From assembly GCA_900088475.1 (NCBI GenBank), contig FLMG01001670.1, forward strand, positions 62,001-126,000: DNA of 64,000 bases, read 5' to 3'. The stretch's first letter is position 1; the number at the start of each line of letters is the position of its first letter. Below, one piece after another: positions 13,667 through 63,244 of the stretch. The notes beneath the pieces were generated by a model, which worked only from the letters and a program-made list of their open reading frames with translations, made no database searches and had not been told where the DNA came from. This stretch comes from Hyphochytrium catenoides (taxonomy: Eukaryota > Protista > Hyphochytriomycota). A program made the position numbers and the translations under genes.

Positions 13667-15618
13667 AGTGACGCAAATCTATCACCTGTGCCACCCACCG
13701 CTTCGAAAGATTATCATGGCCTCGCTGATGATGTCCAGTCAATAAGAATGATGGCGAAGCTCATAGCATATTGGCGTGGGCGCAATAACTTTTCTTGGGA
13801 CGAGTACGGCGAATGTGCAACCCTATATCAGCAGGCAGAGGTCGGAATCGACTGTAGAAAGCCGGCGAAGAAGGAGTAGTCGGATCTAGCAGTAGTCTCC
13901 ATGATGTACGTGGAGGCAGACCCCTTAGGTTTCTTCTTCAAGACAAGATGAGCAATAGGAGGGAGACTCCAAAGGAGGAGGATGATCAACCTGGTCATCA
14001 CCTACCACCAACAGAACATAGCTCCGTCAGCGCCGCGCTTCTCTTGCATTGGGCGCTCTGTGGCGCCTGTCGCGCTCACAAAGCCACGCGCTTTCCAATA
14101 GAAAGAAGGCCAGCTGGAGATGAAACGGACGCTCAGTCAGGGGTCATGAGGTATCCTGAATATTAAACACTCCAAATGAGGTAGTTGAGGATGAAAGATG
14201 CATATATTCTCGATGTGTGCCTTAACCATTGCAATGGGAATGTAACGGCCTTGACAGTGGGGTTTCAGGTGATCGGAGGAATGGGATGAGCCGGCGCTAT
14301 GCCTCGACTTCGCAAGTCTCCCATCTGCTTTGCATAGAAGCAGCTCTCAGCTGCACTCTCAGTCATGGCAGACTTTACGTCACTTATCGACCTCTTTCAT
14401 TCTTCCTACAGGCACCACCACGCCCTGCTGTTGTCGTGCTTTCAGAGTCGTCTGCGTCCTACCTCTTCCTAGTTGCTAACTACCACAGGCATTGCGCCTC
14501 TTCTTGCAATAATCTTTTGGCTCTCCCACGAAGCACCTTTGCCATGCTGCTACATGGACCCTTCTCCAACCTTCGCAGTCGTATAGGATGGGGTCCCTTC
14601 GCTGTAGACATTTAAGAAGAAGGACCACGAGTATTAATGCGGATCGTGCTAAACTAACTCTCTGTTTGGACCACCTTACGGTGTGTTAGCTCAGGCAGTA
14701 GCCATGTCTAAGTGTTCGAGTTTGGTTGTAGGCTGGCTGTACTCTGGCGAAGGCTGGCCGTATGATGGGCTTTAACCAGCCCGCTCGAGGCAAGATACAA
14801 AAGGAATAGTCCACGGCAGAGTACGACGTGAGTAAAGTCAGCTTATAGCGAAGCCTCTCAACTGCAAGTGAGCAGTCAACAAGATTCTCAGGAGGTCACC
14901 TTGACGTCGACCACTTCTTACTGTCTGCAAGCCTTCTTTTCGCGATATTTGTCTAGGGCGATGGGAAAGAAAGAGCACAAGCACAACTCCTCAAGCACAA
15001 CTCCTCATAATTCTGGACGGGTTTTTGCAGCTCGTACGCATGTATGAGCTGACCTGGAATTATCCTTCCCAGAAGTAATATAATGGTGATGGAACAGTAC
15101 ATGTGACTGTTCAGCAGTGAACAATGGCGCAGAGACATGAAAAATCGCAGAGGCTTTCGATAAGAGTTGCAATCATAGCTCGTGCGTACGGAACTATACT
15201 ACTTTGGCCTCCCACTCATGTCCTGATAGATAAGATAGGACTTTGCCACTTATAATACCAATAACCTCTTTGTAATCCCTTGTCTGGCTCTGTCTCCCTA
15301 CTCTAGGGAAGACCCTGCTCCTAAAGTGCATCTATCGCGTGGCTCAATACCGGCTCTCTAAGTGACCTAAGGTAAGATGAGCCACCACCAATTGTGCACT
15401 CAGGACAGATAATGGCACGTCTTGGTGGGCACAGTATCCCAGATCAGCAAGCACCCATCAGCCGAACGGGAGTCTCAACGGTCTACTAAAGCCTGGTCAC
15501 CAACTTGTGTCCGCAATCGGTCTCGTGTTCCTACGGCAGCCTAACAAGGTCCCTACTGCCGGCCTGCCACTGCTCCTCCTGCAATGGCCAATGTTCGGTC
15601 GTTTGCCTCAGCATAACA

Positions 15619-16069
15619 CTAAGCTCTAAACTGCCAGTCCCTCCTACACATTGGGCATTGTTGCTTCGAGTTCTGTTGTGACCCGAGCCATTGCATTATG
15701 CAATGCATATGGAACGCATGATTACACTGGCCCCACACTGGATGGCAAGGTACGACGTTCGGTAAGATTGCTAGTAAATCGAGAGAATGAGGGCTTACCT
15801 GGTGGGCAGTCGTCCCCAGGAACTTTGCAGGTCGGACAGCATGCTTCAAAGGGCATTCTACAAATGCCGCAGCAGTCATCGTTCACATCCCATTTCCACA
15901 CAGCCACGCCGTGCCATCTGACCATGATTTATAAGTGTCAAATTCAGGCATGATAAGCTTTCGTCTGCTAACTCACCCTATCACCAGAATTATTGAAGAG
16001 TTCAGATAAGCTACAGCAGTATGCGATAACAAAGAAGAATGTGAGCTTACTTTTTATCTCGACCTTCAT
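15619..16069 (-). CDS. APC11: Anaphase-promoting complex subunit 11 (RING-H2); exons 16069-16051, 15977, 15917-15799, 15737-15619
   Basis: Spliced product MKVEIKRWHGVAVWKWDVNDDCCGICRMPFEACCPTCKVPGDDCPPVWGQCNHAFHMHCIMQWLGSQQNSKQQCPMCRRDWQFRA matches the highly conserved APC11 pattern. Confidence 0.95.
15977..15977 (-). other. APC11: Single-nucleotide exon (G) of APC11
   Basis: Minus strand reads ..ggtgatag|G|gtgagttag..; the upstream exon ends in phase 1 (AAA A|gtaagc) and the downstream exon starts in phase 2 (cag|A TGG); the G completes A|G|A = Arg. Confidence 0.8.
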
Positions 16070-16658
16070 TCCTCGAGTGCTTGGCTCGCACCTAATCTCT
16101 TTGATGAGCCTCTTTCTAATTTAAGTTCTTGGTTGGAGTCCGGCACAAACTCTCCACGAGTGCCAAAGACTTAAGACTGAGTACCTTTCCAGCTCCGAGA
16201 GCACCGCAGACTGCAGACGTGATGGGAAGGACCGTCAGCGAACAGACCTCAGATGAAGCTGACGGATCACGCGATGACCGATGAGGCACAACTCAATGAA
16301 GAAAAGATCATCAACAGCAAAAGAGTTAACTCTCTCTATGCGCGCCAAATTATGGCGTTCGAAAATGTAAAATGACTGTCTTTGAGAGAAAGAAAGACTC
16401 CCCTAAAGTCAGAATTACCCATTTCAAAATGTAACGTTGCGAACTTGCAAGCTACACACAGAAATCTGGGTTGATCTCTGGCTCTGCTCTCTTCTTCTTC
16501 AGAATCACATCATCAACAGCGACTTCAGAAGCGTGAAGGTCTGAAGAGGGCTAGCAGAGATCCATAGTGCGATAGATAAGAGAAGTTCAAGGACCGTCCA
16601 AGGCTGATGTGCATCAACAGCGCAGAAACCAACTACCTACAGCAGAAGTAAGCGTAGG

Positions 16659-19600
16659 ATGGAAGGCCGTGAGTCATCTGCCGTTCGGCGCGAAGGTGAT
16701 CACCATAGACCTTCAACACGACCTCCGCATGCCAGCTCAAGGCCGCAATATAGACGTCGCCGAAGTCAGGGTGCGCGAACTTTAGGGTCTGCTGGAGGGC
16801 AGGGACAGTCACCGTCTCAGCAGCACCACCCCACGCCGACCGCCACGATACCGCCAGCTGGGCGGTCCGCAGATGACTCCTCAAATGTGGGTGAGGAAAG
16901 TGATCTCCATGACGAGATCCCCGGTGCCTTTGTTGTGGGTGATGCTAGCACCCAGAGCGAACCATCAGCTGATGCTCGAGTGGTAGGAGAAGGGCATGCT
17001 GAACGTCGTGGAAGCCGAAAGTCGAATGGTATGGAGAACAAGTCATTTTCAGTTAGATCGTCTCTTGCACCGACAAGAGGTTTTTATACTGGCGTAGGTC
17101 GACATGGACGCAACCGAAGGCAGCAAGGGAGATCTCAAGGGGACACAGAGCTGGAAGCTAAGCAGGATGAAAGTGGTAGGAGATGCTTCGTTGTGTCTCA
17201 CCTACAGACCCATACTCTATGAGTAGATGTGACAGGATCACTCAACAATGCGGCCTAGCCTCTCGTCTTAACGCCAGGTCAATAATGCGAGCAGTGAAAA
17301 GCGGGAACGTAGGTGATCTCAAGGAGATACTTGGCAGCGGAGATAGAGAGATCGTGGCGAAGGAGCTAAACACACTTCAGCCTCCAGAAGATCATCAATA
17401 TCTGGGGAGACAGACACGAAACAGCAGAAGAAGACAACAACACACTCAACATGACGACGACCCACAGTCCTCTACGCCCTGCCAGTGCCCTCAGTGCCGC
17501 GGTCTTTCCCCCGATACTCCTTTGCTGTTAGGTAGGCTGTGTAGCTTACCCTATTCTGCCCTTGTCCTTCCGGCCTATAGCCAGTCGTCTTCATAATTGT
17601 TGAGTGTCCCCTAAGGATCGCTGCCATTTGGGCCATATATCTTCCTTCCTTTCATCTCTCTCTCTTCTTTCTCGTCAGTGCGGTTACTTCTTGGTTTTTC
17701 ACTCTTCGCTTGCTTTCCGCTATCACCGTCCTTCTCACGAGCCTTTCTGCCCTTGTCCTGGCTGTTTACCTAGCGGCGAGCCAGAATGACCTCGATATGT
17801 TTAAACTGCTCCTCTCCTACGGAGCCAGTATTACCAAGGTCAGCAGTCAGGGAGAGAGCTGTCTCAGCATCGCGTGTGGGTTCGGAGCGGTCGAACTGGT
17901 GCAGTTCTTCCTAAACATGGATGTAGACTTTTTGGCACTCAGGGATAAAGACAATATATTGAGAACCCCACTGTTAGTGACAGCAGGATGCAACCAGTGC
18001 GTGACAAGTATCTCAATAGCTTCTTAGTAGGCGCTTTGCGTCTCTTTCTGCCTCTCTACCGCCTCTCCTTCTAAGCATCCATATTTTCCTTGCCTAATGC
18101 TTTTCTCAGTCTTTGGGGAGCTCTCCTTCGCAATGCTTCATGGTTCTATCTACTCTCTGGCCGTCTAGTCTCGCATTCTCCCAGTTCGCATATAATCGTT
18201 TATTCAACCAATGTAGGGATCCGGCAAAATTTGCGGTGGCTCAAGAAATTGCGGACCTGCTGCTCCGACACGCTTCTAAGCAAGGGCCCGCTGCCGTGCA
18301 GGCCATGCTGGAAGCTCGCGATAGTCGTGGGTGGGGTGTTCTTCACCATTGTTGCGCAGCAGGGAACGCTGGGCTCCTGACATTTTTTTCGGAGTACAAC
18401 CTTAGGAGTGCCGAAGGTTAAGGCGTTTTCCTTTCAAGTAAATGACAAGGAACTATAGTGACACCGTTTTCGCAGGAAGTGAGGTCACCTTAAGCTACAA
18501 GGAGGTGGATTGGACGGTAATCAAGGTGATTGAAGACGAGTTCGAGCAACATTATCAGCAGCAAAATCAGCAATCGGCCACTAACTCAGGGGGTAAGGAC
18601 GCGCGGGTTGTGATGGGACTCAAAGACAGGCAGTCCTGGATGTTATGAAAATTTGGGTGTCAAAATGATCATTCACGAGGGCCATCAATCATCGACGAGC
18701 GGGTTACTTAAGCCCAGCTGGGATAACAACCTGGTGGAACCACTACAGCTCTGATGTCATGATGGACGACACTAATATGTAAATTTAGGATCAAAGAGAG
18801 GCAACAACAAGAACAAAAGAGCTAGAGCAGAGCCAGAAGAAGCAAACGCTAGCGATGAGAAAGCTATCAAGGGAGGACTGCAGGAAACGGACGGATCTAA
18901 CGTGAAGGAGGACCCCTGCCGCCGTTACTACGACTGCCTGCAGGCCCTCATAAATATTTTCGGTAGGGGTTGTGGTACCTTCATCCCAAAAAGCCTACGC
19001 TGCGTCTAGGTTTGTCTCATGGCCACAGCTTTTTCCCTTTCCCTCCTTCCGTCCTATTGCCCGGATACGAACCGTGGCGCTAAATACTCTCCTGCCTTGC
19101 ATTTGTAAAAACTACTCTGCAACAGGTTTTCGGCGCACGTTGGTTGCAGATAAGTCCCTGTCCATTTCTTCCAAACCATTGTTATTGCAAGTCTTGGCGC
19201 AGTTTGGGATCAGAGCATTCCTCAGAGAGGTAAGCACTCGTGGCAACTCCAAGAGCATAGCCCTCCGGCACAAACAACTATCACAAAGTAGTAAGACCTA
19301 CATGACGTTGCGGGCTGCTTTGCTTAGCTTAAGTCATGGGTAGCATCGTTTAGCAAGGGAGATAGAGACGGTATGACTTCCCCAGACTAAGCAAGATTTA
19401 CAGGCTTATGTGTTCTCGGATGATTTGGATGTCAGCGTGTTCCTGATGCACCTGGCCGGATCTCTTGGCAGCCTACACGAGCATCAACAGCAAAAGAAGC
19501 GCATTTTGCCCGAGTCCAAACAGCTGTGGGACAAGGTCATTAGAGAGACAAAGGACATACCAGATGTCGAGCTGAGGTAGGTTTATCTGTTCATGATCTT

Positions 19601-33400: not shown

Positions 33401-36400
33401 AGAAGTGAAGAGGATAGAAGGAAGACAGTGCACGGCCACTTAGTGGGCAGCAGGACACTGCTTCCCGACAATGCAAATCGTAGCACGGTCTCAGAAGGTG
33501 CAAGCTCTGGAGTCACTGACACCTGATAATCTCTCACGTTCGCTCAGGTATCACTACCATTCCTGTGGTGCCTTACTCAACCCATTGACATGTAATTTTT
33601 TCGCCACAATTCATATATCCCTTTGTCCATACCTCAAACCCCAGATTGAAGATCTCTTCAACACTCAAGCCTCCTCATCTCGCCTATCCTCCTTACTCTG
33701 ATCTTACCTTTCAAGCTTCGGCTGAATGAAGATGTCAAGCGGAATGGCAGTAAGATGAATAGGTATAGGACAAACTTGCTTTCTGCCTAGCGTGGTGCTC
33801 CATACGGTCCGCGAAATGGTATTACCCGGTCCTGTGGCAAGTGTGAGCATTTAGTACTTATGACAGGGCAGAGTGGATAATAGGCGCAGCTAATGTAGAT
33901 CCTGAACAGGTTGGAAAGGAAGCAGATAATCAACCCTAACTCGCGAAGAAAAGAGCACTGAAGACATTGGTGAGAGAGAGCCAGGGCCACAATAGCGAGG
34001 ACGCAAGACCAGCAATTGAGGAAGCCCTCTCCCATAAATTTCATGCCCAAAGTGAGATCGCCATCGGCACTTACCCGGCAAAGACGGCAGGGCGAATTCT
34101 ATCGACAGCGGTAGCTCGGTTAGGTTCTGCAACATCTAAAGGGACAGCGGTCCGCTTAATTAGTGCAGCCCTTCAGTGTCTCTGGTAGGACAATTATGCT
34201 GTCTGGGCTTAACCCTTTCTATTTCCGCCTTCTCTTCCTGACACTATGGTACGGCACCATGTCTAGCCAGTCCTTACGCTCAGATCCCCGACTGCGCCCC
34301 TCCTAAGCTTCATCTGGGGACCTTACGTACCTGAAGTGATCGGACGAGCACGACCTTGCAGCCATGGCGCACCTCAACGTCTACAATGCAAGAGGCGGTT
34401 GGGACAGAAAGTCCCTCTATTATCTTGGGGTCCTCGGTAACCAAAGCGTACGATTTGCTCCTCACGACGTCCACGGGAATATTAGATATGGGCTTCCATC
34501 TAGACAGTTACAAGAGGCACGAGAGGAATAAGGACCTTAGGTATAAGGCGATACGGGTTTGTATCACAAATACCAAACAATTCACAAGTTAGATTTTGAT
34601 ACTAGCGTCCTTCAGCCTGGCGTCGAGAAAGGCGTGAAGCCGTGCCAGCTAGCGCATCCTATACCTTTTCTCCCCAAATCTCTCGATAGAGATTGATATA
34701 GTAGGAATTGTCCCATCAACTGAAGGCAAGGCACCTGAAGCCGTACGCTTCACAAGTGATCCGGCTCGGGCGGGTGCTCCACGGCCACCGTATAGCCGAA
34801 CATCCAATGGAACCTTTTCGCCTGGTTCCACTTCCCTTACGACTGGGATGGAGAAACGGTAAGGGACATCGAGCAACAAGCAATAATTAGAAAGGGGTAA
34901 GTATATAGAGACCCTTGATGGACTAGAGCTTTAAAAGGCTACAGTTCTCAGACCGGACCTCACCTCTATCTGTCCCCCAATACCACAACTTCACTCCCGT
35001 CAGATTTTCCACCCAATAGAGGGAGAAGGTTGACTGGTTCCGATCTTCACTTCTCGTCTTTTGGGATGCAGACCATTGCCAGGCTCGCCGGGCACTCGCC
35101 AGAGTCTCCAGTAGTGCCTCACTGATGTTTAGGTTGAGTATGGTCTCGGAGGAAATCAGTAGAGAGGCGCCACTAGTGGGAAGTTCTCCTTGTGCATTAA
35201 CCTGAAAATTGCAGCAAGAAAATAAGAGCACTGCTGGTATGTTCCATAGCTCTTTATATCGCCATGGGATTCTGCTTTAAAGAGGTAACACCGATCTTTT
35301 TCAAGGTATATATACGTGTGGGCTCTCTCTTCATCTGAAAAAGGTTGCGTGTGATATGGCTAGCGTTAAATTCTTACCGCGATCGGCTCCTCCATTCCTG
35401 GCCTAGCCAAGTCTGATACCTCCTCTCGTACCACATGGTACACTACAGTGCAGCACCAAGGCTCTATCAGGGGTTCCCAAGCGACCAATCTGAGACTATA
35501 GTAGTTCATTTGACACGAGAGGGACATTGTCAGCCTGGTCTGTATAGGTCCTTCTCCCTCACTTAAAAGGCCCTTGCCGTGAGGGTGGTCTTCCATCTCG
35601 ATGTCTATAGGAGATATGTCCAAGTCAAGGACAGGCAAATCCTGGCCATACAGGTCATTAATCAGGAGTACTCTAACACCCTCAACGGAGAGGGTGGCTT
35701 CCACTATTCCTCTCAAATCCCTTCTCCGTATGACAGTGTTTTCGGGAACTCGTCGTCCAGGCTGAAGGTAGGAGGACGCTTCTGTCTCTTCTTTCTCCTT
35801 GACAGCCAGCAAAGGCCAGCCTTCTTTGCCCCTAAGCCTGGTGTTTTTGTTCGTTTGCTTGTTCATTCTTGCTACTTCCGCGGCTTCTATTCCGCTAAAC
35901 ATCCGCTGGAGATTTTCCATAATCTTTTCCATCATCGGAAGGTCTTGGAAGGCTATTCTGGACTCCAAATCCCCCAGCCGCCCTTCTACTTTCTGTTTCC
36001 ATCCTGCGGTAGTTATCTGCTTTCCTTCTTCTGCCATGAAAGCGACTGATGTGACAGAAAATGTGAGAGATGCGGGTCGAATTATTTGCCACATTGTCCC
36101 CTCACTCCTTTTCTGTCCTGGAGGGTCTAAAGGAAGTGAAGAAGATGGTCGCAGCGGCGGCCTCTGAACTCCCCTCGCGCTTTTGCCCGCATCGAGATGA
36201 GGGAAAAAAGAAATTCCCTGTCTGATCTCTGGAACACTAGAGAGTCTTAGGGTTTTGGGGGGCTCTTGAAGGGGAGAAGAGATTCTCGAAAAGGAAGGAG
36301 AGCCGCTTGCTTGTCTCCTAGTGGATTCTCCCGCCGAAGGTTCGAACAAGGGTGTCTGGGGCCTCAGCACTGGAGTAGATTGGCTCTCCTTGTATACAGC

Positions 36401-39400
36401 AGGGGAAGACATGAAGAAGGACGAGGAGCCGGGGGAGGTTCTGCCTACAAACGCCTCTAAGCGAGAGCAAGAGATGGTGGAAGTCTGTACCACGGCTTCG
36501 CGAAGACAACCTATATGCATACAGTTCGTTACGAGCAAGCAAAAGTGCTGACGGAATATAGTAGCAGCAAAATGATGCTAAGAGAACGGCTGGACAGAGG
36601 CATATAGATCTTTACGCACGTTAAACCAGAGCGTGGTCGAGCCCAGACCTTCGTGAAAACACAGCAATAAAGCTGTATATTGCCACCGCTTACTGTACCT
36701 TTCACATCTTCCTCACAAGGTTGTTGAACTTCAGCGGTTTTACGTATGTGAGAACTATGCAGACGAGCTGCCGGGTTGGATTTGGTTTGGATCAAGTTGA
36801 TATCAGTGACTCTCGTTTCAAGCCCGAGATCTGCCCTTAGTACCAAAGCGTGACAATACTCCTGAAGTGTCATACGTTGTATCAGGAATTACTAGCGCGT
36901 GGTCTGATATTCAACCGTGACACTAAGGACTTAGCTAGCTAGACCTACTAACCTTGTTTGGATCCTCAAGCAGCCACAGCTCTAGACTTTCTAAAGACGC
37001 TCTGATTGTCAAAGGGCTCTCCCGAGGCTCTTTCCGCATTTCCCCTTCGCTGCTCCGCGGGGATATCTGCTTCTCTTGTTTAGGAGTAGTTAGTGTGTTG
37101 CTCCCTTCCAACCCTTCGTTCGCATCGCTGTCTTCGAGAATGGAACACTTTCCGATGGCTTCAAGCAAGATTTGCGAGGGGCCTTCTACATTCGTCGGGC
37201 CACTTTTGTACCTGCCGTCCGAGGGGCCTCCCTCGACTGTTGGTTCTTGGAAATGGGATTTTGTTACCTTTCTTGCATGCTTAAGCTCTTCCAGCGCCGT
37301 TTCCCCGTAAGAGGCTATGGAGGCGTAGGTCTGTATGACAAAATCCGGGATAAGAAGACATCGCCAAGGGCCTAATTTCATCTCCAGAGAGTGTGATCGC
37401 GAGTCTTGGAACTCAAACCCTTGCAAGTGTTCTTCTCTGCGATACACACTTATCGGGGTCTCCTCATAACTGATCATCAGCTGCCGCCAGGGTAGCGAGA
37501 TTAGCAGTAGGAGGTTGGAGTTTAAAGAAGGGAACGATTGGACAAGATAATTGAGATGACCTTATCGAAGGGCTATACTAGGACAATTGTACAGAACCAA
37601 TGACAGGGCAAAAGCTCGTAACACGGTTCTGCCAAAGAAGCTGACGCTTTTCAAAGCAACCAATGGAGAAACTGGCCCTGTCGGCAATGCAGCTCTTACC
37701 TGCGGGTGTTTACGAACCAGATCATAATAGGTACTTGCACTGGTCTTTCGGCTAGTTCGTCTGTCTAAGGGGGACACTCCGGCGATCGACAGAGCTTCCG
37801 TTGATTTCCGCGCTGTGGCTAAAGGAGGGCCCAAAACCTGCGTATACCGGCCCTGGTCACACAGCAAGCGTATTTAGAATGGTGAAGGTGGGCAGAGATC
37901 GCAGTTCTAAGCATCATGGCATAAATTAAGGTACAATTACGAGATGACAAGGACCAGACGAGTGAAGAATGCACATACAGTCCTCTCTTCGTTAAGGTCG
38001 TGCAGAGCAATTCCACCGAGCATGACGCTTAGCCTCCTTAATATTCGCTGCTCTTCGTCCTGGCCAGCGATAGCCCCATTAAACTCCACCCAGGTCACAG
38101 CCAAGAGGGATATGGGTAGTATCGCAAATGAATCTTTTGTAGGGATCTTCATCAGTCCATCTTCGTCGCCGGGTGACTGTTTTATACCCATATTTGGCGG
38201 AGTCTGAGGTTTGCCCTGCTCCTTATTGTGGAAGACCGCTGAAGGGGGAATGCGAAAGGGGTCCTTCACCCTGGAGTCGTCAAAGCGGAGGTCTGAACCT
38301 GTCAATCTCAATTCTCTGGGGGTGGCTAAGCCTGCAGGAAGTCGCGACCTTGAAGTAGCCGAAGCAGGCCTGGGACTCAGCTTCAGCAGCTTGAGTGTAA
38401 CCTCTTCCAGCTGCAGACAGAACCGAAGGCCAGTTCCCTTGCTGTCGTAGCTAACAGGAATTCCGTCGACGGCGCTGACTCCTTTCACAACATGTTGCTG
38501 AGGGCAGACAAACATCAGTCGTAATGATGGGATACGCTTATTTTGCTGCGGGGAGGCAAACTAGCAGAATGGGTTAGCGAAGGCTCTTCATTTTAATCAC
38601 CTGCTGGCTGTCTCCAGTCGCCACTTCAATGACCTCCAACATGTGCAGAAACTGCAAGCTATAGACCCGCATAAGTAGGGAAATGTGCACCTCACTAAGT
38701 GACAGACGAACCTGATGGGATATGGGTGGCAAGTGGAAGTAAAAAATGAGAGTACATTAAAGAAAGCACCCTTTCACTCTGTCCTTTCTTGCAGAGTGTC
38801 CTAATACTTACTGCAGAGATTCTACCAGTAATGCAAAGACAGGGGTCGTCAGCTTGAACGTAAGGTAATGGCAGCCTTTCCGCAATTCTTGACGCTCCAG
38901 GGGGCGGTAAGCGGGCGGTAGGGAGTTGCGAAGCTGTTTTAAAGTGAGATCCCTCGTTTGCTTCCTGACCTATCCCATCTACCATATATAAGGGGTCCCC
39001 TACTCCGGTCGACTTGGAGCTCCCCACGCCCTTGATTTGATCATTGATTGGCTTCATCATCTGCAACCGCATATGGACGTCATCAATCAGCCGACCAAAA
39101 TTTCCTACTGAGCAATTAAGGGCAATGATCTCCAGCAAGAGCTTCTCCGCAGCCCAGTGCTGGCGGGAAGTTTGCTCTATTTTATCCCATCCGAATATTC
39201 CGATCGAGCGCCGCAAAGATATTCTACCGAGGTCAACAACAAGAGACTCGTCTGGATCTGGAAGTGAGCCGTTTGGTAGGACTTCAACGGCGGGTAGCAC
39301 AATCAATGGGTTGTGTATATCCACATTCACTCTAACGAAATCCGACGAGGAAGCCACAGGTGCGGAATAGACTACCCTTTCCTATTGTCATATCCAGGTA

Positions 39401-50691: not shown

Positions 50692-53600
50692 ATGAGCCAG
50701 CTGGTGGAAGATGACTTCAAGTGCATTGTCTGCCTTGATCTGCCTCGGGCAGTGCGTTTCATGCCCTGCAGTCATGCACTTATGTGCAGGTAGGTTACTG
50801 CTTTCCGCTCTTACTCTCTCAGCTCCCAATTCTCATTAGCTCTAGCAGTGCTGACGCCAATCAGTGGATACATCGAAATGGGAAATGCCCAAACTGTCGA
50901 GCTGCCATTGAAGGCTTTGTACTCATAGAGAACCGGGATCCTAGACAGACCTTTGTCTTGACAGACGAAGACGATAAAAGGGAGTTCCACCGCCTTATTG
51001 AGAGCTCTCACCGGTCAAACGATGGGGAGACTCTTTGGAATCCGGCGCCTTATGTTGACGCTCAGCTGCGATTAGGATCCGGATCAGCAATTCAAGCTCT
51101 CATTAGGGATAACCAAGCTGCTCTCTCGGCCGCACAGTATGCTCGAGCACTAGCGAGAGAGAGGACTCTCCCACCTGAGGACACTGTGGGGATCATCTTA
51201 ACGATGATGAACGAGAATATCGACAGCACCGTTCTTCAGGAGGCGGGATGTCGGTGAGTCTTTAGGTCGTAATTTGCACTGCATTAAGCGCCTTCTCCAA
51301 CTTTGTACTTAGTGCCCTAGGTGATCTGGCCCACTCCAATAAGATCTATCAAACGTTGGTCCTACGGCAGGATGGCCTTAGAATCGTCAGTGAAGTTATC
51401 GAGAGAAACAAAGCCCAGATAGGTATTCAGAAATGGGGATGCTATGCCATTGGTCTCCTAGCAGCAGGTCAGGTCCTTCCAGCATCTGGTCTCTATTCAC
51501 TTTGATGTCTCACCTCTATTCTGATCGTTGCGCTGTACTGGCCCTCGGGTAAATGATGTAGGTTGTCCTGAAAATCAGCGGGAGCTTGCAAACCGCGGTG
51601 TGATTGGGACGATCCTAGAGACTATGGTCCAACTGATAACGTTGACTGACTTGCACCGGTGGACTTTGTTCGCACTCGGCCAACTTTGCTTTAGAAATAC
51701 GGAGAACCAGAACCTAGTGAAAGCGCTTGGGGGGATCAGCACGATTCTCTATCTTGTCTCGTCAAACCTCTATAACCCAGATATCCAACAACAAGGTAAA
51801 GAGTTGAGCAAATGATAAGGTCATAGGGTATTAGTTAGAGATACAAACGCTTTCGGAGTTCGTAGACAGTTACCATCGTGAAAGGTGGAAGAGTCATATT
51901 GGGCCTTGAATGCTGAAGCCAGGTTTTCAATCCTTCCTAGCCTTATGGGTTATAGGAGAGCTTGCAGAAGGAAACTTGGAGACGCAAGTGACTTTGCAAG
52001 AGGAAGGCGTGGTTGAGACTATAATGGAGTCGATCCAGAGCCATCTTCTCAACAAAGATGTCCAACAATGGGGTTGTTATGCCATTCGAAGACTGGCAGA
52101 GAACAACCTGTCCCTTAAACAGAACTTTATTGATGCCGGTGCCCTTGATGCGGTGAGCTCCTTTTCCTTCCTTTTGGCCCATAACTCTGGTCCTGAGATA
52201 CTCTTAGCGCCCCTTGTTATCCGTGACTCCTTGGTCTCTCTTTATCTTTGACAACATGCCGACGTCATCTTACCACGCACTGTTGGGATTTTCGGCCCTG
52301 ACTCTCTCTCCTACTATCTCTTTGCCTCAGGTAGCTACAATCCTCAAGGCTAGTCGAGAGGAGATGGAAGTGGCGCGAAGGGCAATGTCTGCTCTGGGAA
52401 AGCTTCTGACGGACAATCAGGGTTACCTTGCTTCCCTACAAGATGAACAAACGATCTTAGTGCCTCTTCGAATCATGCAGGCGGGGGAGGAGGATGTGAA
52501 CCTTACTATAGAGGCAGTCGCTCTAGTGTCGAGACTTATTTCCACGGGCGACGCGCAGATATGTAGCAATTTTATGAAGTTGGAAGGCCTGCAGGCAGTG
52601 ACAGACGCGATTGTCTCTGAGAGGTAGGAAAATCAAATAAGTGCAGATAGCTGACTGGATGCATGGTCTTCTCCCAGCTCCATTTACGGACAAGCAGTTC
52701 TTTATGTTGCTCCTATTTGTTGGTTACATGCTAGCTTCCCTTCGATGTTCTAACGGGACGCAGGCCAGTATAGCTGCCTAATGCATAGAGTCTAACGGCG
52801 GGCTATTTCTTTTGATAAATACTACAGGGCGGATGCTACCTTGCACATGTGGGCTTGCTACCTGTACGGCAAGCTCTCGGAAAAGTCCTTCTCTGGAGAT
52901 CAGTTTCTACCTGAAATACTTGCGTCCGGGCTTAATGCAGTCACAAAAATTTTGTTGAGAAGAGGGGAAGATGAGCATGTCGTTAAAAAAGTATGCTATC
53001 TTTTCTCAAAATTCTGGATGCACCGCAAGATTTTCCACAAAGCTGTAAGACAGCTGGATCGAGAACAGATAGAATCTCTGTCAACCTCGTTTGTCAGCAC
53101 TCTAACAGCCTTGAAGGACAAGCACTGCGTGACCAGGGATACTTTACAATTGGTTGGTCGCCTGGCAGGTGTAAGCCCAGTTTTCAGTGCTTTTCTTGTA
53201 CAGAAAGGTGCGTTCGAATCTGTTTTGAAGGCGATGGAATGCTGTTCGGACAGTGAAGAAGTACAGCTGTATGGTTGCTCTTGCCTTGCTAAGCTAGCTG
53301 AGGGAAGCAAGGAAGCTCCGGAAATGTTCTTCAGCTCTCCAGGTAACCCTTTCCTTCCTTTCCTTTGCGTTACTGTGACATTTGTCCAAGAAGATCCGCT
53401 TCTGCTCCGCACAAACTTCTTCAAGGTGCATGAACAACTCTTTTTTGAATCCAAAATATTTAGCTAATCCTGTCTTACAACGTCATCCCGGCCCGCTGAT
53501 GGTACCTCGCCGCTTTGGTTCCTATGTGATGAAAATTGCCCCGTGTTCTCCTTTCCCACGCTCTCTTCTCTTATGCATATGTAGGGTCACTACCCCAAAT

Positions 53601-54926
53601 CATCTCTGTCATGAGGCGCTACTCGAGCCACAATGGGATATGTTCGAAGGCCTTAACCCTTCTCATAGAGCTCAATCCTGCCGGCGAGCGAGAGCGACAA
53701 GACCTTTATTTGACGGCGGGAGTACTGGAAGCTATCGGTTCCATTCTTCCTGGACTCAGTTCTCCTGAAGTGATACAAAAGAGCTGCGGTGTCATCACCC
53801 GTGCTGCTCGAAACAATGAAACTGCTCAAGTGAGACTGGCAAACCTTCTCACTGTTCCCAAGATAGTGCTAGGCATGCGACGCTTTGAAGACAACAAAGA
53901 TTTGCAACAGTCTGCCTGTGCTGCCCTAGCACAGCTTGCTGACCGCTCTTTAGAAAACCAGCAACAGATCTTGTCGCAAGCAGAGGAAGGACGGGTCAGT
54001 GAAGCCGTCGCTGCTATTTTAGGGGCGATAAAACGTCATGCTTCCTCTGTCAGCGTTATTGTCAGCGCCAGTGCTGCACTGGGAAATCTTGCCCGAGGTT
54101 CCACTGTTAACCAAGAAGCGTTACGTACATCGGGGTGTTTGCCTCTTCTGCTAGATGCCTTGAAGCAACATGTAAATATTGCAAAGCTGCAAGAGAAGGT
54201 CTGTTGGGCGCTCTCACTTATCGCAGATGACAATCCTGCGGTCAAAACTGACATTGGACTCTTGGGCGGAATTGAGTCGCTTGCCCTCTCTTTCAAGATC
54301 CACAAGCTTAATCCCCGCGTAGTGATGGAAATTTGCTACTGCCTTGCAACGCTGTGTGACTATCATCCAGAGAATCAGAGCGTGATCCTACTGACCGATG
54401 TGGTACCTCTGATATCGGAGAGCCTCGAGCTGCACTCGGGCCACACCGACGTGCTGCAATGGGGTTGCTATGCCATTGGGAAGATGTGCAGTGCGAACAT
54501 GGATGTGCAGGAGGTGTTTCTGAAGCAAGGTGAGGCCATTACTCTGCACATTATGTGGCTTCGTTCATATTTTGACGTGACGATCTTTTTGGAGCTTACC
54601 TCTTGTTATCCCCACTAACAAGAGCTCTCTCTCTTGTATGCCCTCTATTTGGGGCTCCTTTTTGTATCTGGCGCTCACGCCCATTGGCTGGCTTAGGGAC
54701 GACAGTGAAAGTGGTGCAAACAATGCGTCTTCATCCACAAGATGTTGAAGTACAGCGGAAGTGTTGCTATGCAGTTGCCTCCATGGCGCTGGCCAATGCC
54801 GACGCGCGGAGAGACGTGGTTGATGCGGGAGGACTCACGTGCATCGAGGAAGCTCTCAAGAATCATGAGAGCAATGAGAGGATTCGACATGTGGCCAGGG
54901 AGACACTGGCGCTACTGAAGAAGTAG
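50692..54926 (+). CDS. N-terminal RING finger + long armadillo-type repeat array; putative E3 ligase
   Basis: MSQLVEDDFKCIVCLDLPRAVRFMPCSHALMC|SAD..CPNCR, followed by ~40-aa repeats such as VQQWGCYAIRRLAENN, VQLYGCSCLAKLAEGS, LQQSACAALAQLADRS, LQEKVCWALSLIADDN, VLQWGCYAIGKMC, VQRKCCYAVASMA. Confidence 0.85.
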
Positions 54927-60914: not shown

Positions 60915-63244
60915 CTACAGCTGCGGGTAGGTGACCAATGTGGGGTAGCGCATTCTCCAGGCATTCGCAAGATCGTGATATAGCTCGGGATGGTGCATCG
61001 CAAAAGCCGCAGAGTCCTCCGCAAAGCAAACGAAGATTGTATCAACTGCCGCTCCCAGCACGGTGAAGAAGACGGCTGCCCCCGCTGCAAAAGCGGCACA
61101 AATGCAAAGCGAGGGTCGGTTAGGACGCCTATGGCTGTAGGCCGCAATCGAAGTTGAAGGTGAACTAGTGTAACACAAGCCAGATATTCTGAACGGCGGC
61201 AAGGGCTTCAAAAGGAGGGATGTCGTTCACTCACCAAGGCCAAGAAGGAAGCCTCCAACGCCCAGCGTGTATATGGCGCCGTCTGACTTGGCCACATCCA
61301 GCTGCGCCAAAACGACGCCGATAACAGCACATAACCCACCAATCAAGACGGAAAACATGAACAGGACGTTGCCCACCAAGTCGTCAGAAATGATAGCGCT
61401 CCAGCCTCGAGCCTTAAACAGGTTGAAGACACTTTTGCAGGCATCGATGTAGCCCATGCCATAAAGCCCTACAACGCAGAGTATAATAACAGAGCACAAC
61501 GAGAGAAAAGAGAGTGAGTGACGGTTAGACAAGCAAGCACGTATGTTTCATGGCGAGGAAAGCACGAGATTGAATAAGTCAGCTCAAGCCACTATGCTCA
61601 CCGACGTAGACAAAGCCCCATTTGTTGATGTACTCAACGATGGACTCCAGGCAGGCCAGAATGCACTGGGCGATGCAAGCAAGAAGGATTGTGATGACTG
61701 CAGTAAGAAGGATATGAATAAAGGTATGTTAGATGAGACGAGACTACGCGACGCACAGTGTGCACGCAGGACGAACCACACATACAAGTCTAACGTCAAC
61801 ACACAGAGCCAGTCAGCTTGATGACGATTCAGATTCTAGCCAGAGAGGCTTTACGCGGCAATTGGAGAGTTACGTCTCAGTGAAGAGCTACGTTTCAACG
61901 AGAAAAAAAGACTGTGGATGGACTACAGCATAAGAAAACGGTGCGAGCTTCAAAGAAACCGAAGCAGATTAAGGTTGTGAAAACGCTTACATCCATTGTC
62001 ATCATCTGTTTGAGCCGAATAAGCCAGCTGCCGAAGTGTACTAATAAAGGCCAACACGAGCGAGCCGAAAGCCACCGAGCCCAAAGATGTAGTGACGGAC
62101 CGGATGAACGCCGACATCGAGGTGTTCTTATACCCGCTGTTGTACCAGAAAGAGCCCATCACGCCCGCCGTGGTCACGGTGTTCAGACTGCGAATGGTGT
62201 AGGCACCGAAGTAGAAGGCAAGTAGCAAAAAAAAACCGCTGACTCCCAGCCATGTATTCTCACTCGAGTCGGAGCCAGGCTTGGTGTACTGTCTGTCGCT
62301 GTGATTGTAGACACCCAACACCGCTATGATCCATAGGGCGGTATAGGCGAAAAGAGCCACAGCAAGGACAACTGTTGACAAGTAAATGCCCCAGTACTTG
62401 TTTAATCCAGCGAACGCAACCCTAGGAGCACCACATAAAAACATGAGAGAGAGAGAGTGATGAAGATGGTGAGGGAGAGAAGAACCAGAGACACGAGCGG
62501 CCCTAGAGAAAGAGTCGTATAATGCGCCACATAACATCGTACAAAGAAAAAGAAGCTCATGCGAGAATATCGGCAAGGCCATTGGGCTTTGAGCGTTGGT
62601 AGGTGCAGTAGAGTTTGGCCATACCTGAATAGTGCGGCAGCAAACGGAATGAAGCTTTGGACGGCCTTAAGATAGCATAACGCGATAAGGGCGAAGATGC
62701 CGAAGATTATGGCACCAATGTACTGGCCAACGGAGGCGTAGAGGACAGCCACCGCGATAAAAAAGGCCACCTCAAACCACAGGGCCACTTTGATAAAAAC
62801 CTCTGGCTTCCAGTTCAGCAGAAACAAAGATGCCATGGACAGCAATCCAGCCAGTACCATGAGACCAACGAGACATATTAGCTCGTTGATCTGAAAATAA
62901 TCTCCAACGCCGCTATCTGGCCGGTCCAGCTCGTTACTGACGGCTTCAAAGCCCCATATGATGGACAGAGCGATAATGGCCCCGACCGTGATGGCAAAGA
63001 GCGCTGCAAATATGGGATCTCTGGTAATGCAAGCATCATAGGCAGGGGAAGACAATCAATACGCAGACAATGAGTACACCTCTCATGACCTAATGAGAAA
63101 CTGCACGCTTTACCTGCAGCCTGGCTTCTGCGCCTTTCGCTGCTCTACGGCGGGATCCTTGTATGCCTCCTCTTCCATCATCATCCCTGGTGATGCGGCA
63201 CCCATTTGCTGTTGCTGTTGTGGGTTATAATAGTTGTCCATCAT
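60915..63244 (-). CDS. Choline transporter-like (CTL/SLC44, PNS1-type) multi-pass membrane protein
   Basis: CR|DPIFAALF; IPFAAALF; VTTAGVMGSFWY; RSVTTSLGSVAFGSLVLAFISTLRQL; CILACLESIVEYINKWGFVYVG|LYGMGYIDACK; RGWSAIISDDLVGNV; AVDTIFVCFAED are CTL/PNS1 family motifs. Confidence 0.9.

Follow-up and report, generated by a model that had tools for sequence, protein, structure and literature searches.

In the window, by which we mean the whole 64,000-nt stretch of DNA analysed here, the APC11 gene very probably contains an exon of a single nucleotide. The minus strand predicts a mature mRNA that reads GAGATAAAAA-G-ATGGCAC and encodes MKVEIKRWHGVAVW, in which G15977 would stand as a single-nucleotide exon between two canonical U2-type introns. 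A complete intron with an AG end lies upstream of this base and a complete intron with a GT start lies downstream of it (GTAAGC..GATAG / G / GTGAGT..GTCAG). The base is needed for the reading frame as well as for the conserved protein sequence. Literature searches for one-base exons in nuclear genes returned only land-plant APC11, VPS55 and Fusarium CYP621A, and no report of a one-base exon in APC11 outside plants was found in them. The window gene appears to be a new case of such an exon, either ancient or recurrent in evolution. If this is true, the smallest possible exon would be an extremely old conserved feature or one that has been reinvented repeatedly.

The APC11 locus in the window

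The locus is the gene for the RING-H2 subunit APC11 (ANAPC11). The spliced protein matched the Pfam family zf-ANAPC11 (PF12861) at 1.7e-31 with 108.5 bits (cut-off 25), and its residues 1-84 aligned with residues 1-83 of human APC11 (4ui9_B, 5g04_B; E = 1e-37). The N-terminal part of this alignment is gap-free from Met1 (MKVEIKRWHGVA in the window, MKVKIKCWNGVA in the human protein), and the alignment is ungapped once intron 3 is taken out. The family match and the ungapped alignment bear out the identification of the gene in the initial annotation of this DNA. The closest APC11 protein matches came from stramenopiles. No protein with more than 76% identity was found in a collection of 5.8 billion proteins, from which the window gene itself is absent.

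Direct reading of the minus strand reproduced, base for base, the anatomy described in the initial annotation, with an exon 1, a 73-nt intron, one G and a 59-nt intron (Table 1). The exon that follows opens with A TGG CAC.. at 15917. When G15977 is included, the coding sequence specifies 85 amino acids with the N-terminus MKVEIKRWHGVAVWKWDVNDDCCGICRMPF; without it the frame is lost and the translation runs as MKVEIKNGTAWLCGNGM to a stop after 17 codons.

Table 1 Features of the APC11 locus with their positions in the window
Feature	Position	Strand	Description
Exon 1, coding part	16051..16069	minus	ATGAAGGTCGAGATAAAAA, 19 nt; MKVEIK and first base of codon 7; phase 1
Intron 1	15978..16050	minus	73 nt; GTAAGC...GATAG; U2-type GT-AG; phase 1 in codon 7
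Candidate single-nucleotide exon G	15977	minus	middle base of codon 7; A/G/A = Arg7
Intron 2	15918..15976	minus	59 nt; GTGAGT...GTCAG; phase 2 in codon 7
Exon 3	15799..15917	minus	third base of codon 7, WHGVAVWKWDVNDDCCGICRMPFEACCPTCKVPGDDCPP, first base of Val46
Intron 3	15738..15798	minus	61 nt; GTAAGC...ATCCAG
Last coding exon	15619..15737	minus	ends with stop TAG at 15621-15619
In-intron ATG, rival start	15923..15925	minus	MVRWH... on retention of intron 2 or with a downstream transcription start

All GT...AG combinations from the ATG to the Trp codon were enumerated, the minimum intron length being 35 nt. Within this exhaustive enumeration no single GT-AG intron restored the APC11 frame, and four two-intron GT-AG solutions were in frame. 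Only one of the four, 16050-15978 / G / 15976-15918, yielded MKVEIKRWH, the sequence that had been put forward as family-typical. The same solution is the only one which combines two strong donors with the invariant K2-x-I-x-x-W8 spacing. Between exon 1 and the Trp exon the motif AG-N-GT occurs once, at G15977. Given the frequencies in the window itself, 0.016 occurrences of AG-N-GTRAGY would be expected per 120 positions, and the looser motif YAG-N-GTR arose in 9% of the shuffles of the intervening 133 nt; a chance occurrence of AG/G/GTGAGT is unlikely.

Both donors, GTAAGC of intron 1 and GTGAGT of intron 2, are as strong as the initial annotation had stated. Its companion statement, that the intron lengths are typical for this genome, could not be upheld, as the genome-wide intron lengths obtained by three ORF-joining heuristics gave noisy and unusable distributions. 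The published Hyphochytrium genome would fit the window organism in its introns per gene, giant-virus (NCLDV) capsid genes and SNPs. In view of the noisy distributions and, should the organism be Hyphochytrium-like, of the published mean of 208 nt, intron length provides no argument for or against the proposed structure. The window donors GTAAGCTC and GTGAGTTA do not fit the U12-type 5' splice site RTATCCTT. No special RNA structure bridging the splice sites was detected in the APC11 intron region (z = -0.40).

Introner-like or otherwise repeated copies of introns 1 and 2 were not present in the window. The similarity between the two introns was marginal (p = 0.03-0.05), and a tandem duplication was dropped as their source for this reason. 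When intron 1 is retained, the frame stays open through all 31 codons to the second donor (16069-15977, minus strand) and the RING domain then follows out of frame; this open frame is probably a coincidence. Elsewhere in the window, an exon-sized ORF on the plus strand (52841-54618) matched ARM/HEAT repeats of the LRRK2-type ARM, and another on the minus strand (61950-63055) a choline-transporter-like protein (PF04515, 2e-23). The longest ORF of the window (35366-36538, 390 amino acids) had no detectable homologue.

The assembly was checked on Logan contigs, not raw reads, of two DNA runs from two samples. The APC11 stretch is present in three DNA runs, which represent one organism and two samples, and a short piece of it in one soil metagenome. 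A search of sequencing runs for RNA gave no match, the other runs found being tiny unclassified ones that lack the stretch, and no splice joints appeared in the contigs. All contigs covering G15977 carry this base, and together with every splice dinucleotide it agrees between the contigs of both samples. No contig showed an indel in the A-run of exon 1 or at a splice dinucleotide. The extra A in this run, which the initial annotation had considered as a possible assembly error, was not encountered, and exon 1 has the same length in both haplotypes.

The two haplotypes were resolved across exon 1 and the first donor (15997-16166). In the surrounding non-coding DNA (window positions 14800-17200) they are about 5% apart and differ by several small indels. 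Introns 1 and 2 hold three haplotype SNPs each, none of them at a splice site. The coding differences amount to two, ATA to ATT at 16055 in exon 1 (Ile5) and TGC to TGT at 15827 in exon 3 (Cys37). Since both are synonymous against a non-coding divergence of about 5%, the APC11 gene of the window looks constrained. In a soil metagenome from 2025, 151 nt of APC11 exon sequence recurred without a mismatch, which indicates that soil is a habitat of the organism or of a very close relative.

Alternative readings of the locus

The protein could in principle start at the ATG at 15925, inside intron 2, as MVRWHGVAV..., with exon 1 not productively used and surviving as a relic or an upstream ORF. This ATG, which had been pointed out in the initial annotation, is indeed present, and the stretch ATG GTC AGA TGG shares the reading frame of the RING domain. 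Moreover, one synonymous change within a 19-nt exon is weak evidence for constraint at a haplotype divergence of about 5%. We nevertheless regard such a start as unlikely. Exon 1 retains its ATG, the MKVEIK codons and a strong donor, and it is identical to the exon 1 of a Nannochloropsis-like locus in 19 of 20 positions. The internal AG/G/GTGAGT would have to be a coincidence (p ~0.016-0.09), and one that recurs in Dictyostelium and in an amoebozoan-like contig, and the KxIxxW N-terminal strand is kept by all full-length APC11 proteins retrieved. It is very unlikely that we are dealing with a pseudogene or a mis-assembled copy in which one G of an ancestral AAAAAG/GT has been lost, the functional APC11 lying elsewhere. 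The window sequence does look like that of the ochrophyte orthologues, which have AAAAG/GT and a 20-nt exon 1, minus one G. However, the 19-nt form is found in both haplotypes and in the assemblies of two samples, and the rest of the coding sequence is intact, with synonymous differences only against the non-coding divergence of about 5%.

A single long intron would remove the need for an exon of one base. The mature junction alone cannot prove the one-base exon, because a non-canonical single intron (GT..CA at 16050-15919 or TA..AG at 16049-15918) gives the identical mRNA, as follows directly from the sequence. Alternatively, canonical removal of 16050-15918 could be followed by a -1 ribosomal slip on A AAA AAU, which this removal creates and which conforms to the heptamer pattern X XXY YYZ. 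However, the spliceosome is not known to use CA acceptors or TA donors, there is no sign of a stimulatory RNA structure (z = -0.4), and inefficient frameshifting is implausible for an essential housekeeping subunit. The strong internal donor directly after AG-N would also be left unexplained, and we attach very little weight to this possibility. Hardly any weight is given to the nearest rival in the enumeration, a 34-nt micro-exon (16010-15977) that would follow a first intron of 40 nt and lead to MKVEIK-TYLNSSIILVIG-WHGV. Such an exon is in frame, free of stops and bordered by GT-AG introns, but the 40-nt intron is far shorter than the other three introns of the gene (59-73 nt) and its sole branch-like motif is 9 nt away from the donor. 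The insertion of 11 residues also breaks the invariant spacing between Lys2 and Trp8. The single G at 15977 is the reading that we follow below.

Codon 7 introns in other lineages

In APC11 genes of other lineages, codon 7 is interrupted in different ways. A phase-2 intron alone, preceded by a 20-nt exon 1 ending in ..AG/GT, was found in the Nannochloropsis-like locus L001, Tribonema, Phaeothamnion, Acytostelium and the contigs L010 and L012. Chrysoparadoxa was assigned to this state from the acceptor alone. A phase-1 intron alone, after a 19-nt exon 1, was found in L022/L013, two contigs of one organism, and in L030, a dipteran-like contig that is 88% identical to mosquito APC11. Phytophthora and several marine contigs have no intron in codon 7. 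The position of window intron 2 is that of the single intron of ochrophyte and Acytostelium APC11 and is also occupied by an intron in plant APC11.

Both introns with a candidate one-base exon between them occur in the window (A/G/A) and in three further loci. These are Dictyostelium discoideum (L029:601-800; A/G/A; tatatag/G/gtaaat; introns of 91 and 86 nt in an interval with 17% GC), D. purpureum (L031:733-900; A/A/A) and the amoebozoan-like contig L009, which has its best match in Echinamoeba (A/G/C). A 19-nt exon 1, a unique YAG/N/GTR and a phase-2 acceptor are common to these three loci and Magnolia. In shuffled intervals YAG-N-GTR arose at frequencies of 0.02 (D. discoideum), 0.036 (D. 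purpureum) and 0.045 (L009). Contig L009 was initially taken as a clean second case and is now treated as supportive, given that a single-intron alternative exists which uses a GTATCC donor and places the Trp at position 9.

For D. purpureum APC11, which is annotated as 'partial', the enumeration gave no single-intron solution. The curated D. discoideum APC11 (Q54L48, MKVTIKSIW) is probably mis-modelled. In this model the second GT of GTATGT serves as the donor (GTTTCT) and the Trp falls at position 9, with the junction ATTAAAAGTAT-ATGGAAC, as opposed to ATTAAAA-G-ATGGAAC in the one-base reading. The latter would encode MKVTIKRW, which equals the N-terminus of Heterostelium and is similar to that of Acytostelium; the exact D. 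discoideum MKVTIKRW variant is absent from the collection of 5.8 billion proteins. The expectation in the initial annotation that gene finders miss such sites agrees with the odd SIW model of D. discoideum and with the 'partial' status of the D. purpureum and Magnolia entries. These gene models are likely wrong, and the missing APC11 in the window genome would belong to the same category.

Two further observations concern the structure of APC11 loci. The first APC11 intron of Tribonema (L025, minus strand), 1208 nt long, contains two degenerate partial copies of the Trp exon at 2343-2408 and 2525-2623, with amino-acid identities of 77% and 85% (tblastn). The metagenome contigs L013 (360-640) and L022 (890-1076) differ by a tandem duplication of about 120 nt, which covers the end of APC11 exon 2 and the start of the next intron and reflects either an artefact of assembly or a true polymorphism.

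The phase-1 and the phase-2 positions in codon 7 each occur in several supergroups, and the one-base layout is distributed over land plants, the stramenopile-like window organism and Dictyostelium or other Amoebozoa. In this comparison the phase-2 intron is an old one with a wide distribution, and the additional phase-1 intron, which lies one base upstream, may be either equally old or derived from splitting or rescue of the phase-2 intron. The exact repetition of the position favours an ancient origin. The one-base exon would then be very old, possibly of LECA age, and not an invention of plants, with one or the other flanking intron lost elsewhere; we hold this to be possible, though with a chance clearly below even. 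Loss of a flanking intron would have produced the phase-2-only state of ochrophytes and Acytostelium and the phase-1-only state of the dipteran-like and other contigs, and the one-base exon would be the natural intermediate of an 'intron sliding' by one nucleotide. Conversely, the phase-2-only relatives which adjoin the bearers of the one-base exon in both stramenopiles and dictyostelids favour a recurrent origin. In that case an ancestral AAAAG/GT may have lost one base, or an old phase-2 intron may have been split, and a cryptic AGGGT would have rescued the frame. The deep conservation suggested in the initial annotation thus gains from the same layout in Dictyostelium and the amoebozoan-like contig, while the phase-2-only relatives fit a repeated origin too.

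In either case, a concrete route for one-nucleotide intron shifts would be at hand. Genetically tractable systems with short introns, for example Dictyostelium with its introns of 91 and 86 nt, would become available for the study of how two spliceosomes deal with splice sites that lie one base apart.

Splicing and comparison with known systems

In the proposed structure the 3' splice site of intron 1 would overlap the 5' splice site of intron 2, as U1 would pair with positions -3 to +6 around G15977. We infer that the two introns are most likely removed sequentially, given that the U1 footprint on the intron 2 donor covers the acceptor of intron 1. If intron 1 were excised first, the product would be AAAAAG/GTGAGT, the one-intron configuration of ochrophyte orthologues (AAAAG/GTGAGT in Phaeothamnion). 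If intron 2 were excised first, a normal acceptor GATAG/GATGG would result. Skipping of G15977 would shift the frame and lead to a stop after 17 codons. This premature stop is at most what could be cited for the splicing checkpoint on APC/C that the initial annotation had envisaged, an idea for which we found nothing in support.

The nearest known counterpart is the APC11 gene of land plants. Arabidopsis APC11 (At3g05870) has a constitutive 1-nt exon, 'A333', which was proven by cDNA sequencing and mutagenesis (Guo & Liu 2015, PMC4674806), so that the precedent named in the initial annotation is well founded. Experimental proof exists for Arabidopsis and soybean (PMC4674806, PMC8831610), and the microexon is conserved across land plants as 'Cluster 1' and is described as having 'evolved in early plants' (Yu et al. 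2022, PMC8831610). The annotated Arabidopsis exon was 10 nt too long and lacked 1 nt (PMC4674806), from which it follows that the phase arithmetic in Arabidopsis is that of the window. At the APC11 locus of Magnolia sinica (L003), exon 1 (ATGAAGGTTAAAATACTCC, 177-195) has 19 nt and ends in phase 1, and the Trp exon has the phase-2 acceptor tacag/A TGG. The best internal candidate there, aacag/A/gtatgt at 874, would give C/A/A = Gln and MKVKILQWH. The initial annotation had asked whether the position is shared, and in Magnolia the candidate indeed occupies the second position of codon 7, directly in front of Trp8, as does the G in the window.

The window gene and land-plant APC11 therefore agree in the gene, the middle base of codon 7, the 19-nt exon 1 and the phase-2 acceptor /A TGG, and in both the frame depends on the base, which was overlooked by annotation. 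They differ in the base itself, a G (Arg) in the window and an A (Gln) in plants, and the window organism is stramenopile-like and not a plant. The intron pairs measure 73 and 59 nt in the window, in contrast to 333 and 88 nt for the Arabidopsis pair and 678 and 2170 nt for that of Magnolia. The plant exon is backed by cDNA and mutagenesis, whereas the window exon is predicted from the genomic sequence. A further difference concerns the upstream intron, which has the U2-type donor GTAAGC in the window and the U12-like GTATCCTTAT in Magnolia.

The Magnolia intron opens with this sequence (L003:196-205), a near-perfect 5' splice site of the U12 type recognised by the minor spliceosome, and a CTCTTAAC element lies about 37 nt upstream of the candidate one-base exon. 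A link between U12 splicing and the plant APC11 intron was not found in the literature search. If the Magnolia U12-type site is real, two different spliceosomes would act on the introns at either side of the plant one-base exon.

A stwintron comprises an external intron whose donor, acceptor or branch site is disrupted by an internal one; the external intron can function only once the first excision has taken place (PMC5587772). The APC11 introns of the window do not overlap; each is complete and canonical in the unspliced sequence, no splice signal is split, and the G would be kept in the mRNA as an exon. The stwintron-like arrangement considered in the initial annotation was not confirmed on these grounds. 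The evolutionary logic of the [D1,2]/[A2,3] stwintron with its 1-nt intron shift (Fekete et al. 2017, PMC5587772) is nonetheless the same as in APC11. In such a shift the loss of either adjacent intron leaves canonical introns one nucleotide apart between species (PMC5587772), and the lineages with phase-1-only and phase-2-only APC11 introns display this pattern.

Recursive ratchet points, the zero-length AG/GT exons of Drosophila and vertebrates, resemble the window structure in that an acceptor is followed near-immediately by a regenerated donor. The regeneration of a donor almost directly after the acceptor implies stepwise removal, as discussed for the plant exon (Guo & Liu, PMC4674806). 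Ratchet points retain zero nucleotides and lie in very long introns, whereas the window APC11 retains one base between very short introns.

The 1-nt exon of Fusarium CYP621A belongs to another gene and another lineage and has RNA-seq support, which sets it apart from the window APC11, where the exon is predicted from the genomic sequence. The two share the AG/G/GT core (AGGGT), the transition from a phase-1 to a phase-2 boundary and the location inside a conserved motif. For CYP621A the proposed origin is the loss of one base at the exon end and rescue by a cryptic intronic AGGGT (Nelson & Syed 2026, PMC12940212), and an origin of this type would fit the window APC11 when it is compared with the ochrophyte AAAAG/GT.
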